64,000 nt of DNA from Paragordius varius (taxonomy: Eukaryota; Animalia; Nematomorpha): contig OZ176050.1 in NCBI GenBank assembly GCA_964247055.1, positions 5,952,001-6,016,000 on the forward strand, in the 5' to 3' direction. Below are positions 16,218 to 57,490 of the stretch, one piece after another. The notes beneath the pieces are model-generated. The model did no database searches. It saw nothing but the letters and a program-made list of their open reading frames with translations, and was not told where the DNA came from. Within the stretch, counting starts at the first letter, position 1; each line of letters begins with the position of its first letter. Position numbers and translations under genes: made by a program.

Positions 16218-19200
16218 ATGAGTGTGCCGATTCAAGAAAAAAAGAAAAAAAAGAAGTTAAAGAAAATTGAAATTCCTCAAGAGGAAACGGTGGATCAACA
16301 CAATGAAGTTTTAACGGCGTCTTTAGATGGAGAAGTTTTTATTTTATAAAATATAGACATCCATGTTTGTATTATACGAGGATGCTATCGGTTATGCCCT
16401 TTTTAGAATTAAACAATATGAAGAGATTGGGATGGCATTACTCACAGATCAATTAAGAGACAATTTATTGGATTATACCAAATTTATAAATACTGTTCAT
16501 TTGATTGCGTTTTCTCCATTTAAAAGTGCAAAAAATGCCTTAGAAAATATAAATTACATATCAGAGGGGCTTATTCATGAAGATTTGTATACCTTTTTGG
16601 ACACTTATTTGCCAAAACAGGCTCTTGCTGGCGAAATTGCCAAACATAAAAAGAAAGTTATGTTGGGTGTTTCAGAACAGAAATTGGGCGCTACTATAGT
16701 CGAAAATGAAGCCTTGAGAGCTAATTGTGTTTATTCAGGACTTATACCAGAGATTTTGAGAGGTATATCTTTTAAACTTTTATAATTATATTTAGACTAT
16801 TTGGCATTACAATTGTATGCATAAAATGCTTAAGCTTAATTTATAATTTTACCGGTATATATATTCATAATTAACACTTCGATTCGAATTGGGCTTTATA
16901 AATACCTCAGACTATATATAAGTTGATATTTTTTAAAAAAAACTGAACAAAACAGTTTCAATTATTTATGCTTCTATCCTAATAAAAATTATATAAATAA
17001 GCCGAAATATCTGAATAAAATTTAGTTCTGATAAAAATTCATTATTAAACTACATCGACGCGATTTTCAATATTTTTGCAAAATATCATGTTATTTTAAA
17101 TTTAAAGCTATAATTAAAGATATTAAAATTTCATTTAACATTTCCATTCGAATTGGGACTACCCCAGACTATATTTAAGTAGATATTTAAAAACTGAAAG
17201 AAATGATCCCAATTTAAATTTTTGCTTCTATCAAGCCAAAACATCTAAATTAAAGTTATTTTTTAAAAAAAGTTTCATATCAAACTACTTCGACGCCATC
17301 TTATTCATACAAAAATTTGTGAAATATCGATTTTATATAATTTTAAAGCTAATTATTATTTAAAACTACTCTAAATTGATGAAATAGAAAAAGTGGTTTA
17401 TTTTGCATTATTTTTAATTTAGTTAATGAACACATGTTGTGTTAATTAAAATTTTACCATTGGGTTTTACCTAAAATGAGTATTATCAGGTATTTTTATA
17501 TTTCGGTTCATTAATGTCATATAAGTACAAGCCTTTGTAATGGTTTCAATATCTTTTATATTTTTTGAATTTAATTTTAAACAGTCCTGTGGTATATCAC
17601 AACCCCAATTCGAATTGAAGGACTTGAATGAATGTGCTATATCCAAGTGTTTATCTATTTTATTCATTTGATTAGATTTTTGTAAGGGTAGCGTCAACAT
17701 TCACCGATTTTTTTATTTTATCAAATATAATAATTTAATAAATTACTATATTAAAGTATCAATTACCGATCTTATTTATAACTATCTTCTAGTATCAATA
17801 ACGTTTAGCGAAAATGTTTATATTAATCAATCTATTTTTACAATTATATCATTCACCATATATTTCATATTTCAACCTAGATGAATCAAATTAATATATT
17901 GAATAAAAAATATTTTTTTTAGTAAACTAATTTATCCAATTATAATTTTTTTAATAATACTCATAGGCATTCGTCAACATTTTACCAAATATTTCCGTAG
18001 GATGGACTCAATAACGGAAAGTAGCGATATATCGAAAGTTACCACGCTCGCTATTGATGCTGATAAGGAGGATAAGGCACAATTAGGATTGGCTCACAGT
18101 TATAGTCGAGCAAAAATAAAATTTAACGTTAACCGAGTCGATAATATGATAGTTCAATGCATAGCTATTTTGGATCAATTAGACAAAGATATTAACAAAT
18201 TTAGCATGAGACTTCGGTAAATACTACCCACATCTTTTTTTCTTATTTCACTATCGTTATTTTCCATATAAAACGAAGTGCTAATTTGGTTTGAGTTTAT
18301 TTCCATATTTTTAAATTAAGCTTTTGAAATGAATAGTCAAAAAGTTTGGACATATGTTTATCCATTGAAATATAATTATACTAGACTATGAAAACAAAAA
18401 AATATTGTTAAATAGTTTTTATTTTTAACTTTGCCAAAATATGTATATTTATTTGTGGTAAAATTTACAAATATACTAACTTCGTTATAAAATCATACCT
18501 CTTATCCCTTTTTGTATAAGTAGTGTATCATAATAAATGTGCGTATCAAAATAATGCAACACTAAACCAAAATATATTGTTAGAAATAGCATTTTCTAAT
18601 AATTCACTTTAATTATTAATAAAGGCCCATTTACCTAAATATTTTATTAGTAAATTTAGGTTCTTTATACATCGATCATTGTTGCAACAATTTATTTATA
18701 TTTTTAAAACTTGTCCCAATTTACATATCTATATATATATATATATTCAATAAGCGAATGGTATTCCTATCATTTTCCCGAACTCTACAAACTTGTACCG
18801 GACAATTTGACATATGCCAAGGTTGTCAAATGTATTGGAAATCGTAAGGAATTGTTTAAAAAAGCACATGCCGGCGACGATGAAACAAAAAGTGAATTCA
18901 CCACAAATTTTAAGGCTCATACTGAATTATTACATGAACAGTTGCTTGATTTGTTGAATAACAACGAAACTTTAGTTGTCAACATTCTCCAGATTGCTAA
19001 ATCCTCTATGGGTATGCTAAACTATAAATAAAAACATAACTTATTAAAAGGTTTACTCTTAATAGGGGAATCGTTAGTTTTGTCAAATGATGTTGTTTTA
19101 CATGCACAATATTATTATAATTCGTTTATTTTTTTGTTTTTTTACGAATAACCTATTTATTTAAAATATGAATTGGGTTAGTTAATTCTAAATAATATCT

Positions 19201-28289: not shown

Positions 28290-28851
28290 CACTATGTTTG
28301 CCACAGTAAAATCTCATTTCAGTCCTTCTATTCAAATTGGGGTAGTTGGATACCCCAGACCTATATAAATTGAATACTTTAAAAAATATGGAAGATATCG
28401 AAACCATGGCAATTGCGTTTAATATAACATTAATAAATATAAATATATAAAAAATTTTATTCAAAAATACTGTATTACTTACATTGATGTGAAACCCAAA
28501 GGTAAAAATTTTGTCGACGTAACATGTGTGCATTGGCTAAATTGAAAAATTAACCGCTTTTTCTATTTCTTATGAATGTTAGATGTAATTTAAATAAAAA
28601 ATTAGCTTTAATTTTACCTTTGAAATTAGATGAACACGATATTTTCAAAAAATTTCTAAAATAAAAATGGAAGTAGTCTGACATGGAACTTTATTTTCAA
28701 ACTGAAATTTTATTTAAATGTTTGGCTTATTTAGATAATTTTTAACAGGATAGAAGCATAAATTTAAATTGGGACCGTTTCCTTCAATAGTTTTTTAAAA
28801 ATAATAATTTAAATTTTGTCTGGGTTATTTAACCTAATTTGAATCGAAGTG
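28290..28851. mobile_element. TTAA-associated MITE family E
   Basis: Colinear along its length with 34557-35079. Ends CCTAATTTGAATCGAAGTG-TTAA. Left boundary approximate. Confidence 0.8.
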
Positions 28852-31303
28852 TTAATACAGAAAATTTATTTAGCAATTATAATTTAATACAATAAACTGC
28901 CAAATTGATAGGTTATGGGTATAAAACTACTCTAAAATGTTATCAAAGATGATTTTAAATATTTACCCTATATAGGCAAAAAATTTAACTCAGCTCTTTT
29001 TACCTGTAGAACTATGGGAAGGGGGCCACTGGTTTAAAACTGAGACGCCATACAAAAATGGCGTGGTTTTGGAGCTAATTTTAAAAAACTCTTAAGAAGC
29101 CATACTAGTTCAGTTAAACACATTTCCGGGGCATTTGCATAATATATCATTCCTTCCTTTAAAATGGGACCATAAATTACTTTATATCCCTTGATCCCAG
29201 TTGTGTGAACACAATTTCAAAATAAAACTTTTAACCATGATTTCGTAAAACGAAAATCTTAAAATAAATCCAATGATAGTTGAATATTAACTTTAATAAG
29301 GCAGTTTAAATATGGTTGATTTCGAGTAATCAATATTTAAGCCTATGCAATAACCCGTAAAAGAATAATTAAAGGCATTCTTATTATTAAATATGTTTTT
29401 TATTATTTTTTATCTCCATTACCTCTATTTACAAATCATTAAAAATAATTATCGGTGAGACTACGTCACAGCAAAGCGTGACAGAGCCAGCAAGTGTACT
29501 AATAAAATAGATATTTACTATATAAATTTTACTAATAAACCTATCCAATTGGCAAGAACTAAAAAATTTCTATATTGTGTTTGCATTTTACAGTTTTATG
29601 CTTGATATTATCCTTACAAATGTCCATATATATTTCGAATGCGGCCAGAAAGGCCATTTGTGTTGAGCACCCCTGGTATAAATAATACAAACTGTATCGG
29701 TTAGATTATTTTTAAAAGATTGGTATAATTTTATAATAAATATTAATTTTAATTATAACCGCCTAAAATTCACAATAATATTGTAGCCGCTTATTTAACC
29801 ATAAATATGACCTATATCTAATAAAAATATTTTAATATAAAAAATATATGTCTTGATTATTGGTTTATTGATTAGTAAATGATAGATAACCACATGATTA
29901 AAATAATTTATAACATTTAAAATATGAGGTATGTTTTTATAGTAAAACCAAATGTATGTGTATCTTTGATATAATATAGAAATGTGTGTGGTGCGTAATT
30001 TAGTGTGTTTCCAAAAAAAACAATTATGTTAAAGTATAAAAAAATGCTTAATTACGGCAATATTTAATATATACCATATTATACTGTAAATTTTTTATTG
30101 ATTACAAAATAAACTTACAGTAGCGTATGACATAAAACATTAGTCTATAAAAAAATGTTTTTTATTAAACAGCCCTAGTTGTATATACACATATCCATAA
30201 TATCATCCCATTTTTTAAAAACCATTTTTTATTCTATTATGGACTTCCAAACGCTACTGTATATTAATAAAGCATTGTCCATGAAAAATGTTCCTATAAG
30301 AAATTTTTAACGCTTAATATTAACCTTATCATTAAATTAGATAAGGCTTTCTGTTATTATCTATAATAGTATTAAGTAGTTTCAACAATTTTATGCTACC
30401 TTTATTATTGAAAAACACATAATAATGGACGCATAAACAACTTTTATCTGTTAAGTATATATTTTTATCCTAATATGTTGCCTTTATTTCTTTTTTGCGC
30501 TAATAAACCATGCATTATTATTTTAATGCATAGTCATAAATTGTGTCATCAATTTATTTATTAGTGTGACACACTTAATAACTTTAAAAAAAGATTTAAA
30601 TTTAATTATGTCATCATGAAAGATAAAATATGATTATTAAAACACTGTATAAAAAAGCGGTAACCGTTTATGTTGGACAAAGCTATTAATAACTAAAAAT
30701 ATTAATAAATCTGCCTTAGTTTTAAATAAAGAGACGCCTATATCTTTTTCAAATTTGGTGGAACATAGAAGCTCGGCTGTTGTTTCAACTTAAAAGCGAT
30801 AAAATAGTAGTCATCACGGTAAATGAATACAATATTGATAATAAATCGATTTAAATTTCATTATTAAAGGTCAATTATTATTCAAAATAATTAAGATGGG
30901 CTAGTCATATCCATCGTAGACGCCCAAATAATATAATGTATCACTAGTTAAAACCTGGCTCTTCTAAAAGTGGCTTAGTAAACTTTGATTTTAGACAAAA
31001 TGTAGAAGAAGCGGAAAATGAATAACTATATCAATCGAGCTATCTTTAACTTTGAGTACCCGTGGTATGATTATATCAATTGATATTTTTATGGATCGCA
31101 CACCTGTTATATTTTTTAATTTTTTGCGTGATAAACAATATATATCAAAGAACCTTTCAATCAAAAATTGTGAAAAAAAACTATCAGACAATAATTAAAT
31201 GATATTATATTGACCAATAGATACCAATATAATCAATATAAAACACTATTAGAGTACGTTGCAATCTTAATATTTGGATTTAAAAGTATGCCAATGCCTA
31301 AAA

Positions 31304-31705: not shown

Positions 31706-33778
31706 CTTTTCATTGCTATCCTGCATCATTATTTATAACTCATTCCCATAAAATATTTTTCAAATTAACATAATTAAATTTCGGCCTGTTTTTTATAGTA
31801 TATTTCAAATTATATTCCTATTTTTTGGAAAAATTTACTTTTAATATGATGACATCTAATACTAAAAAACTTAAATTATCCGATGAAAATCGCTCCTTCA
31901 AAAAAGAATGGCAAGAAAAATTCTTTTTTGTTTTAAATTATATTACCTGCCTTATATGTAAGGACAACATAATTATAAAAAAATACAATATTGAAAGACA
32001 TTTTACAATCCAAATTTCTCATAAATTAACAGAATGCGGAAAACGAAAAATACAAGATTAAAGAATTATACCAAAAAGAAAAATCTATTATGCCCATGGA
32101 TTTCTCCCAGGAAAACGCTCTAACATTAGCTTCGTATGAACTATTATTTAGATAAAAATATAAAACCATTCCCAACTAATAAATGGTTGCACTTTTTTAT
32201 TTGATAAATTCCATAATAAAGATCAAAACATGAGGCAAATTAAAAAACTTACATTCTGATTCAATCGACGTATTGAAGATATGTCTAAATATATTTTTAA
32301 CAATACATTATTGGCTCTGAAAAACTGCAAATATTTTGGTATTGCTATTGATTCTAACACTGATATTAATTCAACACCTCAATGTGCGCTATTAGTGAGA
32401 TTTTGCAACGACAACATAATCAACAAAGATTATTTAAAATTTTTACCAATGAATAATACCACGAAAGAAAGTTTTCACGAAATAAATAGCACTTTTTTCG
32501 ATAATTATATTATATCTATAATAAAATTGGTTTCGATCTGCACTGATAGCTGTCCCTCAATGATAGGAATAAAAAAAGGATTTTTTTAAAATCAAATAAT
32601 TTGCAAAATATTTTATCCTTTCACTGGGTTATTCATCAGCAAAACTTCGTTTCGTGTGTGAAAAAATCGCTTCATTCAGTTAATAAAACGGTTGTGTATA
32701 TAGTTAACCGCATCCGTTGCAGAAAATTCAACCGCTGTTTCAAAAACCTTTTAAAAGATATCCACAGTGAGTTTGATTATATTCTTTTGTACACCGCTGT
32801 GAAATGGTAAGCCTTAGTAAAGTATTAGAAAGATTTTCTGTAAGACATGAAATTCTAATTTTTAAAAGATAACAGAAGGTTTGACGAGGAAATTAATAAT
32901 GACAAATGGTCGGTTTTATTAGACCTTTGCGACATTACTTATAAACTTATTTTTAATACAAGTTCAAAGGAGCAAAATAATAACCCAATTTGCTAACCAT
33001 ATATTTGCTTATGAAGAAAAACTAAAATATATATACAAGATTTTATAAATTAAACACCCCTATACAACACTTAAAACGATTTATGAAGAAAATATGGAAT
33101 TTAACGCGGAGATTAATTTAATATTGGACAATCATTTAACATTTTTATAATGAAATTCAGATTTCAAAAGAAATATTAAAAATTGCTTAAAACTCGTTGA
33201 AAATACATGGCATATGGATATATCCAATATTAAGCAACTTGAGCATTTCGGTTTTGATCAGGCGCATTTCATTGATGAATTCGAAGATTTTAAATGATTC
33301 CAATTTGTGGCCCTATTCAAGGAAAATCGTAGGGAAGAAAGATATGTAGAGTTTTGGCAAGATGTGCCAAATAAATATGAAAATATAAAAAAATGTGCTC
33401 AAGTTATCCTAACTTTTTCCTTCAACTTACACGTGTGAGAGGGCATATTCAAAAATGAAGTATGGAAAGAATACACACAGAAACCTAACCGATGATCTTA
33501 TGGACAACTTTGTAAAATTGGCCTGTCATGAGTCGAAACCAAATTTGAATTACAGGTTAATGTCCAATACCGTTGTTAAAAAATATTTTATTTTTTAAAT
33601 GGTGCAAAACTTTTTAGCTGGATTATGCGATCCGCAAAAACCATTGTGCTAATTTAGAGTATAAATATGTGCATATGTTCAAATAGCTATGGAATATTTG
33701 CCATTATAAGGTTCATGGCCCTCGAAAAAAAAAATATATTTTATTTGGCCCGTCAATTTTTTTTGGTGAGTACCACTG
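31304..33778 (+). mobile_element. Full-length but decayed hAT DNA transposon (Buster/SPIN/Charlie group; GTF2IRD2/EPM2AIP1-like transposase)
   Basis: TIRs CAGTGGTACTCA / TGAGTACCACTG. Perfect 8-bp TSD GCCTAAAA at 31296-31303 and 33779-33786. Broken transposase: ENRSFKKEWQEKFFF..TCLICK..KKYNIERHF, FGIAIDSNTDIN (first catalytic D), SICTDSCPSMIG, FHWVIHQQ, C-terminal TYTCERAYSKMK..RNLTDD. Many stops and frameshifts. Confidence 0.95.
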
Positions 33779-33854: not shown

Positions 33855-34471
33855 TTATTTTTTATTGCGATTCCGGACAATAACCCATTCATCATCACTT
33901 GTTAATGACTCAGTAGCTGAATCATCATTTGTTATAGCAGAGTCATTGGATACTGGATTATTATTTGATATATCAGGGTTTTCGGTTATCAGAGAATTTT
34001 CGGGCATCGTAGAATTTTCGGGTATCATAGAATTTTCGTTGGTAACTTCAGATGTTTCGGTTTTCTTAATATTTAAAATATTTATACCACAACTATTTTG
34101 GTTGATGAATTTTTAGCCCGTTGGGAAAGGAAATTTTCCAACTGTGATATTTCATTATCCTCAAATAGATTAAATACCACTCTTATATCAGAAGCTATCT
34201 GAGACATTAAAATAAAATACCAACTCCAAAGTTTTATCTTGAATAAGCGTATTAAATTCATATTCTATAATGTCCTCCAAAAAATCCATTACTTCATGCA
34301 AGACAATAATTTCTAAATTTTATTTAAAAACAAACCATCTTTGAAGGCATTGTAAACTTCCTTACTGAGATAGGAAATAAAATCAGATTTCTTTACTCGC
34401 TTTTCACTTTGTTCTATTGCAAGAGTTAGTGAAGGCCAGTTATCCAGTAGAATATATAATGCGCCTTCCAT
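33855..34471 (-). CDS. TSR2: Pre-rRNA-processing protein TSR2 homolog (182 aa), 4 exons separated by 23/22/23-nt introns
   Basis: Exons 34471-34336, 34312-34221, 34198-34088, 34064-33855 give MEGALYILLDNWPSLTLAIEQ...LHEVMDFLEDIIEYEFNTLIQDKTLELIASDIRVVFNLF...(acidic/low-complexity)...SDDEWVIVRNRNKK*. Matches the TSR2 family pattern (W-P-x-L-x-x-A, EVEDFL...EFDTVVEDGS, terminal W-x-x-V-R/K). Not in the supplied ORF track. Confidence 0.9.
34065..34087 (-). other. 23-nt micro-intron, TSR2 intron 3 (an alternative donor at 34093 gives 29 nt in the same frame)
   Basis: GTATAAATATTTTAAATATTAAG. Retention gives an immediate TAA. Confidence 0.8.
34199..34220 (-). other. 22-nt micro-intron, TSR2 intron 2
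   Basis: GTATTTTATTTTAATGTCTCAG, phase 0, between ..TLEL and IASD.. Retention causes a frameshift and stop. Confidence 0.88.
34313..34335 (-). other. 23-nt micro-intron, TSR2 intron 1
   Basis: GTTTGTTTTTAAATAAAATTTAG, phase 1. Retention reaches an in-frame TAG. Confidence 0.88.
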
Positions 34472-34556: not shown

Positions 34557-35079
34557 CACTTGAAGTCTTTCGATTCAAATTGGGGTTGTTGGATACCCCA
34601 AGTTTGTTTAAGTATAAATCCTTTAAAAAATATAGAAGGAATCGAAAGCATGGCAAAAATTTGCACTTATATAACTTTAATAAACCGAAATATATAAAAA
34701 ATTTTATTGAAAAATAATTGATATTAGTTATATAAAGCTTAACCAAAAGGTAGATTCATCAGCGCAACATGTCTGAAATGGTAAAATAAAAAAATAATAC
34801 AAAATAAACCGTTTTTTCTATTTCTATCAATGTTAGATGTTAATATAAAAAATAGCTTTAATTAAAATTTAATGACAAAAATTTTGTAAAATAAAAAAGG
34901 CGTCGATGGAATTTTTTTATCAAAACAAAATTTTATTTAGATATTATGGCATAATTATATAATTTTTATTAGGATAGAAGCATAAATTTTAATTGGGACC
35001 GTTTTCTTCAGTAGTTTTTTGAAAATCCTAACTTAAATTTAGTCTGGGGTATTTAGATACCCCAATTTGAATCGAAATG
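34557..35079. mobile_element. TTAA-flanked MITE family E (possibly piggyBac-derived), about 85 bp upstream of the TSR2 ATG
   Basis: TTAA at 34553-34556 and 35080-35083. Inverted TTCGATTCAAATTGGGG / CCCCAATTTGAATCGAA near the ends. Confidence 0.82.
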
Positions 35080-35930
35080 TTAAAGGTTAAAGGCCAAATA
35101 AGTGACACTATTTCAATTTATAAGGATTATATATATGCAGTATACTTTAATTATTATATCTATTAAACTATCTCAGATATAAGTTACCTAAATTATCAGA
35201 GATCATACGATTGGCGAGTTGTAAAGAAGTTACATAAATATAAAAAGAAAGGACCTACATAAAATAAAATTAATAAAAAAAACTCACAAATCAAATAAAA
35301 ATGTTTTAAAATATTTAGATTTTAATAGAAAATGGTTAAATTATCGCTTGAACACACATCATGTCTATATACATTCAAGTCGGTATGGTTGACGAACCCC
35401 GGCCTGTATTAAATATTTTAGCATGTGATTGAAAACAACTTGGATTATAACATAAGACAAACTAAAAGGATACATTTAAAATGACTTAGTTTAAATAATT
35501 TTTTTCTTAAGATTAACACTCGTTTGGGATAGTTTTATACTCCATAGCGATTTGAAATTCGAATATCTTATATAAATTTAAAAATATGCCTCAGGCCTTT
35601 TAGGTGTTTTATACAAATTTTTTTAAAAAAGATAAAATTTTTAAAAAATGCACATCTCAAATTCGCTGCAATTTTTTTTGTTTAAAATTATTTAAATCGC
35701 TATTGCAACAAGAATAATTAAATGGATATTATGGTTAGAAAATATAAAATTACCTTTAAGCTTTCAGGATGCAATTTACCAGTAAAACGTGAGTTAAGTT
35801 TAAATATCAGATGTTCGTTTCAATTGTGTTTTGGAGCTTTCAGAATTTTAGACTCTAGAAGTCACAAAACTGTAAAAAACACATTTTTTTATCTAATGAA
35901 AACAATTTGCTAATCTAAACTTAAGATATA

Positions 35931-36523: not shown

Positions 36524-36988
36524 TATATAAAACTACCCCAATAAATACAAAAATCATGAAGCTAGATATTTTAGAAATTTTGTCTCAATAAGATTGTTAA
36601 TAAGATAGAGGTATAAATTTAAATTAGACTGCCAATTTAAGTACTTTCATACCGCATAAAGTCCACAAAAAAATTCTTGATATATATATATATATATTGC
36701 GACCAAAATGGGGCGGTATAAAATCTATATATTTTTTGATAGGAAAATGTGTCAAAATTATATTGTTGTTTTTGGTTTGTCCCATACCAGTAATTTAAGA
36801 TATTAACACTTTCTTCATGATATTTTTAAAATAAAGGATTTAACTATTATCTATTTAACATAAAGTGATTTAGTTTAGCGATATCTCGACATAAACCAAT
36901 TACCTCGTGTAAATATTTTTCTTATTTGTAAGGCCCAAAACCAAAAGCAAGCACCTTTGGAATCCTTATACATTTATCCATCAGGATT

Positions 36989-37019
<31 letters not shown>

Positions 37020-37208
37020 CATTTCCCAGTCAAAAAAACGTTTTCCCAGTCAAACGTACCATTATCCCAATCAATCGAAACGTTTTCCCAGTCAATCGAA
37101 ACATTTTCCGAGTCAATCGAAACATTTTCCCAGTCAATCGAAACATTTTCCCAATCATTAAAAACGTTTTCCCAATCAATAAAAACGTTTTCCCAGTCAA
37201 TAAAAACG
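37020..37208. repeat. Minisatellite, 9 x 21 bp (consensus TTTTCCCAGTCAATCGAAACR)
   Basis: Contiguous units with no spacers. It explains the FSQSIET and IDWENV pseudo-ORFs in the ORF track. Confidence 0.95.
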
Positions 37209-37562
37209 GTTTTATATTTAATGATAAATATCAAAACAAGATAAACATTTGCTTACATATTACGCATCTCAAAATCAGGAATAAATCATATCTTGTTAAA
37301 TTATATATCTTCTAAAAAAATTACGATCCTCATGGTGCAGAAAGTTTAGCGGGTAATAAAATGAAAATTAATACAAAAAGTTGCTTGAAGTTAAATATGG
37401 TGGTGCATTTTACAGAAGATAGAATCAGCGGAATTTAAAAAGCGTGTGCTAAAATTATTGCCTTTATGGGAATAGCTAAACCTGTTGATTTATAGTATCA
37501 CTCTGCGAAAAACTGTTTCAAAAATTTATTACATTATGCATTTTAATGCATGTTATACTATA

Positions 37563-38167: not shown

Positions 38168-40821
<2,654 letters not shown>

Positions 40822-43243: not shown

Positions 43244-57490
<14,247 letters not shown>

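Follow-up and report, generated by a model that had tools for sequence, protein, structure and literature searches.

The minus strand of the 64-kb stretch of animal DNA analyzed here (the window) very probably carries a TSR2 gene that is functional and is interrupted by three tiny introns. We consider it likely that this locus is the single functional TSR2 gene of its genome. TSR2 is an ordinary conserved ribosome-assembly factor, and its presence is expected; the unusual part is the structure of the gene. As judged from the sequence, the case for TSR2 is carried by the Pfam matches to two of the exons rather than by the length of the open reading frame that can be stitched together.

Structure and family membership of the candidate gene

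The window has a GC content of about 26% throughout. The candidate sits between two other genes. One encodes a class-I PI3K catalytic subunit and matches human p110-alpha in its first exon (E 1.6e-20); the other is NOP56-like, as recognized by eye from ORF translations. These neighbors span about 14 and 9 kb, respectively, with kilobase-sized introns, and repeats are common in the window. If the candidate is transcribed from the minus strand and its three GT-AG introns (23, 22, and 23 nt) are removed by the spliceosome, a coding sequence of 549 nt would result (Table 1).

Table 1. Features of the candidate TSR2 gene (positions in the 64-kb window)
Feature	Position	Strand	Description
Candidate TSR2 gene	34471-33855	minus	Four open pieces and three GT..AG segments; 617 nt of DNA
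Exon 1	34336..34471	-	136 nt; starts with ATG; 45 codons + 1 nt, phase-1 end; N-terminal half of the WGG/TSR2 domain
Intron 1	34313..34335	-	23 nt; GT..AG; GC 13%; in-frame TAG at its end (34315-34313) if kept
Exon 2	34221..34312	-	92 nt; second half of the WGG/TSR2 domain
Intron 2	34199..34220	-	22 nt; GT..AG; GC 23%
Exon 3	34088..34198	-	111 nt, 37 codons; presumably the last part of the helical N-domain; without homology support
Intron 3	34065..34087	-	23 nt; GT..AG; GC 9%; in-frame TAA at 34084-34082 (bases 4-6) if kept
Exon 4	33855..34064	-	210 nt; 69 codons + TAA; acidic Asn/Ser-rich tail with a short basic stretch at the end

The separate exons total 549 nt, corresponding to 182 codons and the TAA stop, with starting phases of 0, 1, 0, and 0. 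Together with the separate exon translations, this arithmetic bears out the exon and intron boundaries and the 182-aa product proposed in the initial annotation. All three introns are preceded by an exon-final G, begin with GTA or GTT, have an A/T-rich body, and end in TAG, CAG, or AAG, with a GC content of 9-23% compared with 27-35% in the exons. In the ORF list, the in-frame pieces measure 52, 37, 59, and 57 aa. None of them reaches 60 aa, and the gene is therefore invisible to ORF finders, in agreement with the original statement that no ORF of at least 60 aa corresponds to it. Two ORFs above that length do overlap the span, one of 61 aa out of frame and one of 97 aa antisense, and neither is the gene.

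No intron length is divisible by three, so that retention of any one of them leads to a premature stop and would be expected to make the transcript non-productive. The initial annotation had stated that each retained intron creates a stop. This is correct for introns 1 (TAG) and 3 (TAA), whereas intron 2 itself lacks a stop; when it is retained, exon 3 is instead read in a shifted frame that meets a TGA (34190-34188) ten codons on. The introns thereby resemble those of the Paramecium type, which are policed by translation, in that no length is a multiple of three and retention always leads to a premature stop. The stops in retained introns of the Paramecium type are linked to nonsense-mediated decay. 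Unlike Paramecium, the organism studied here is an animal with the standard code, and TSR2 ends in TAA.

The family assignment was assessed exon by exon against PF10273 (WGG, pre-rRNA-processing protein TSR2), an 80-position model with a gathering cut-off of 26.8 bits. Exon 1 scored 18.1 bits (E 0.0038; residues 4-44 on model positions 4-44), and exon 2, for which PF10273 was the sole family matched, scored 18.9 bits (E 0.002; residues 5-28 of the piece on model positions 52-75). Each score lies below the cut-off; the sum of these two separate exon matches is 37 bits. The matches are ordered along the model, and six residues (one from exon 1, the split codon, and four from exon 2) bridge the seven model positions between them (45-51). 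Such ordered matches with compatible spacing are expected if intron 1 has been correctly removed. Exon 1 also matches SAC3, an unrelated helical family, with an E-value of 0.0017, similar to its value for PF10273. The calibration was therefore checked on ten flanking or antisense control ORFs of 34-50 aa, among which no Pfam match below E 0.05 was observed.

A six-frame PF10273 search of the whole 110.5-Mb genome returned exon 2 as its only match. The exon 1 peptide, the exon 3 peptide, and the 617-nt DNA each occur once in the genome. The initial annotation had noted that an intact TSR2 copy elsewhere, combined with the lack of a spliced transcript, would make this locus a pseudogene; the whole-genome search gave a single copy, and thus there is no other copy to make 34471-33855 a pseudogene. 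Together with the ordered matches of exons 1 and 2, these data support the TSR2 identity put forward at the outset.

The protein is a divergent member of its family. The W/F-G-G tripeptide that gives the WGG family its name is absent, and exon 1, the region in which the motif lies in the yeast and human sequences, contains no GG dipeptide. The peptide encoded by exons 2 and 3 and the terminal W-x-x-V-R presumably resemble human TSR2. The searches for relatives used single exons, and length limits put full-length TSR2 proteins out of their reach. Within this scope, word search found no relatives of exon 1, the ESM Atlas gave no usable match, and HMMER against 1.84 billion proteins returned three matches, all of them multi-repeat proteins unrelated to TSR2. 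Exact look-ups of the 52-aa and 57-aa ORFs also returned nothing, in collections from which records of this genome may be held back. In sequence searches of the PDB with exons 1-4 taken singly, no Tsr2 chain was matched.

Downstream exons and the extent of the gene

The end of the PF10273 model falls within a few residues of exon 2, short of the C-terminal W-x-x-V-R, and exons 3 and 4 gave no Pfam or PDB match. Removal of intron 1 restores both the frame and the alignment; for introns 2 and 3 the evidence is frame continuity (P ~0.001). Beyond exon 2, passage through at most two mini-introns extends the frame by 106 codons, an extension with P = 0.001 under a Markov null and P = 0.013 for random starts in the real window. 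Using a codon table built from 1,315 homology-supported codons of the same genome, we found that in all four exons the annotated frame outscores the other frames of its strand in codon usage and scores positively, with exon 4 reaching +22 bits. Compared with stop-free null segments, the codon usage of the individual exons is marginal (P 0.05-0.3). Exon 4 encodes 14 acidic residues (D+E) versus 5 basic ones (K+R), and four of these five basic residues fall within the last six positions. Frame continuity and codon usage, together with a tail that is acidic as in yeast Tsr2, suggest that exons 3 and 4 belong to TSR2.

A genuine TSR2 gene with a different structure would be the next best explanation, although we regard it as improbable. 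Such a gene could have an extra 5' exon joined through an intron of normal size, could end after exon 2 or 3, or could use a different last exon. The family support confined to exons 1 and 2, as well as the kilobase-sized introns of other genes in the window, would fit a structure of this kind, and the AG immediately before the codon that precedes the ATG could in principle serve as the acceptor site for an upstream exon. Against an extra 5' exon, the Pfam alignment begins with residue 4 on model position 4, and the N terminus thus looks complete. An in-frame TAG lies two codons 5' of the ATG, and the frame search found no upstream ATG within 730 nt that lengthens the frame, even when four mini-introns were allowed. 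Termination after exon 2 would leave 86 residues without the tail that is required in yeast Tsr2 for eS26 to stay free of RNA (PMC6131548), and an extension of 106 codons is improbable by chance. We thus favor the four-exon TSR2 model.

Introns of the same size class, gene decay, and chance

The small introns of the four-exon model have counterparts in two ribosomal protein genes of the same genome. The gene for eS26 (RPS26), the client of TSR2, is present at one locus (L005:1440-1900; G000:C4:11925001-11925330, minus) and contains two 24-nt GT..AG introns. One of these segments, with an in-frame TAA, separates the matches to PF01283 model positions 2-60 (95 bits) and 62-103 (62 bits), and the codon that it splits corresponds to position 61 of the model. 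The other lies directly 3' of the ATG. The eS26 gene is intact, including its basic C-terminal segment. The gene for eS19 (RPS19; L016:1501-1863; G000:C6:9053084-9053446, plus) has introns of 21 and 33 nt between family-conserved residues; the 33-nt intron carries a TAA. The length of the 21-nt intron is a multiple of three, with no in-frame stop, and its retention inserts only 7 residues; the stop-on-retention rule is therefore not absolute here. Both genes are essential and would be unworkable unless their 21-33-nt segments were removed. The TSR2 introns (22-23 nt, GT..AG) fall within the size class that homology proves in eS26 and eS19, and by this analogy the tiny introns of the initial annotation gain support, suggesting that they may likewise be spliced.

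Ultra-short spliceosomal introns (<30 bp) have been described in myxobolid Myxozoa and in Dicyema japonicum (Hadjez et al. 2026, PMC13644364). Thelohanellus kitauei and Myxobolus rasmusseni have a median intron length of 22 bp (PMC13644364), and in the study of Hadjez et al., introns of <30 bp were not found outside myxobolids and Dicyema (PMC13644364). The TSR2 introns resemble them in their length of 22-23 nt, in GT..AG ends whose 5' signal is reduced ("GTa/t"), in hardly any polypyrimidine tract, and in an A-rich stretch shortly before the AG. The genomic setting differs: the myxobolid and Dicyema genomes are compact, with a tiny median intron (PMC13644364), whereas kilobase-sized introns and common repeats are found here. 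The present case adds to the evidence that an animal genome otherwise rich in introns and repeats can contain introns of <30 nt.

Candidate 22-nt introns were also seen in the neighboring genes, at 57027-57048 (PI3K) and 16335-16356 (NOP56). The PI3K candidate was tried as a control and rejected: the piece upstream of it matches human p110-alpha strongly, and the piece downstream matches no p110 structure. The eS26 and eS19 genes served as controls in its place.

Gene decay would account for the interruptions differently, as insertions and frameshifts in a TSR2 pseudogene that yields no functional protein. The unusual divergence of the locus, with the W/F-G-G lost, sub-threshold Pfam scores, and no relatives found, points in this direction, as does a dispersed repeat 89 nt upstream of the ATG. 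We nevertheless consider decay quite unlikely, because no other TSR2-like locus was found in the genome, which has an intact gene for the client eS26; because all the interruptions are GT..AG segments of 22-23 nt that follow an exon-final G and are AT-richer than the exons, like the introns of eS26 and eS19; and because 182 codons are free of stops at 26% GC, where by our estimate ~9% of random codons would be stops.

The frame itself was examined by dynamic programming, which sought the longest frame beginning with ATG after deletion of up to three GT..AG segments. This search returns exactly the TSR2 model described here, with allowed segment lengths of either 20-25 nt or 18-35/40 nt. The readable frame grows from 52 to 86, 114, and 182 codons as the introns are successively removed, with no further gain from a fourth deletion. 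Among 80 simulated 64-kb strands of the same second-order composition, the maxima had a mean of 120 codons (SD 20), with a top value of 175. A stitched ORF of 182 codons is thus only modestly unusual and would recur by chance many times in 110 Mb, and we do not treat it as decisive evidence. Three consecutive plus-strand ORFs at 31825-32810, by eye a decayed hAT/ZBED-type transposase, provide an example from the same window: chance GT..AG pairs stitch this transposon remnant at 32.3 kb to 182-210 codons, which calls for caution on stitched ORFs taken alone.

Although the simulated strands, the transposon remnant, and the SAC3 match of exon 1 all fit an AT-rich stretch that was stitched through convenient GT..AG pairs and has only noise for Pfam matches, we judge this the least probable explanation and very unlikely, given that adjacent exons match a single 80-position family, with the matches correctly ordered and consistently spaced, that the ten control ORFs lack such matches, that the genome-wide PF10273 search finds this site alone, and that codon usage favors the annotated frame in all four exons.

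Proposed function and consequences for annotation

Tsr2 is the escortin of eS26 in yeast and human (PMC4161973, PMC6131548, PMC8880767). Yeast Tsr2 comprises a folded N-domain (1-152) and an acidic disordered tail (153-205), and the tail keeps eS26 free of RNA (PMC6131548). The N-domain, Tsr2-N, has a six-helix fold (PDB 6G03/6G04). The 182-residue product of the four-exon TSR2 gene would similarly consist of a helical N-terminal domain, encoded by exons 1-3, followed by a tail encoded by exon 4 that is acidic and probably disordered. It is like the Tsr2/TSR2 escortins (PF10273) of yeast and human in its ordered model matches across exons 1 and 2, in its size (182 aa versus 205 aa for yeast Tsr2), in the acidic tail that follows a predicted folded N-terminal part, and in being encoded by a single-copy gene alongside an intact client gene. 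It differs from the family in that each exon stays below the cut-off and the W/F-G-G tripeptide is missing, and from yeast Tsr2 in having 113 aa before the tail, compared with 152 in Tsr2-N, and a tail that is Asn/Ser-rich as well as acidic.

By homology with the yeast and human proteins, the product may act as a dedicated escort of eS26. It would take eS26 from importin in the nucleus, its acidic tail would shield the RNA-binding surface of eS26, and it would then hand eS26 over to the nascent 40S subunit (the pre-40S particle).

The structure of the gene bears on how genomes of this kind are annotated. In AUGUSTUS, min_intron_len is hard-coded at 39 (PMC7858049). Every TSR2 intron is 22-23 nt long, and an AUGUSTUS run with this built-in 39-nt minimum thus cannot model the gene. 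The suggestion in the initial annotation that default predictors would miss or fragment such a gene is therefore supported in principle. The minimum intron of HISAT2 is 20. The annotation of the hairworm Gordionus was made with STAR and BRAKER/AUGUSTUS 3.4.0 and contains 10,320 genes at a BUSCO completeness of 71.6%.

A broader reading is possible, although we put it forward only tentatively and think it more doubtful than the gene itself. The genome may be a non-compact animal genome, with kilobase-sized introns and many repeats, in which introns of 21-33 nt form a class of their own that is found mostly in small housekeeping genes. TSR2, eS26, and eS19 might then be systematically lost or broken by AUGUSTUS pipelines, and, if the genome is that of a horsehair worm, the "rampant loss of universal genes" published for this phylum could in part be an annotation artifact. 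The TSR2 locus offers a test case, as a gene predicted to be complete, single-copy, and in an essential pathway, with all of its introns 22-23 nt long. Taken together with eS26 and eS19, it suggests that claims on the gene content of this genome, and possibly of the lineage, need re-annotation at a lower minimum intron length before "loss" is believed.

Several further features were noted around the locus and elsewhere in the genome. The dispersed repeat upstream of TSR2 is about 520 bp long (34560-35084), with copies at 28321-28855 and 16871-17628 (reverse) that share 68-76% identity. As it lies 89 nt from the ATG, the promoter would be either very short or inside the repeat. A tandem repeat at 36957-37244, probably a minisatellite, reads as heptapeptides in several frames (e.g. 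ETFSQSI). A minus-strand ORF at 38168-38368, whose end resembles by eye the C-terminal part of a calponin-homology domain, is probably the final exon of the gene that lies upstream of TSR2.

The genome also contains a BiP/GRP78 gene (L012:1540-3204; G000:C4:12482568-12484199) that ends in HDEL and is 80-85% identical to vertebrate, arthropod, and nematode BiP. A search with a NOP56 exon gave no match, and in a search for the nematode cuticle-collagen domain PF01484 neither this domain nor the controls were recovered. The protein collection held no relative closer than these 80-85% matches, which came from fish, birds, arthropods, nematodes, and Trichoplax. Identity at this level corresponds to a fairly normal rate of protein evolution, apparently unlike that of the fast-evolving myxozoans.
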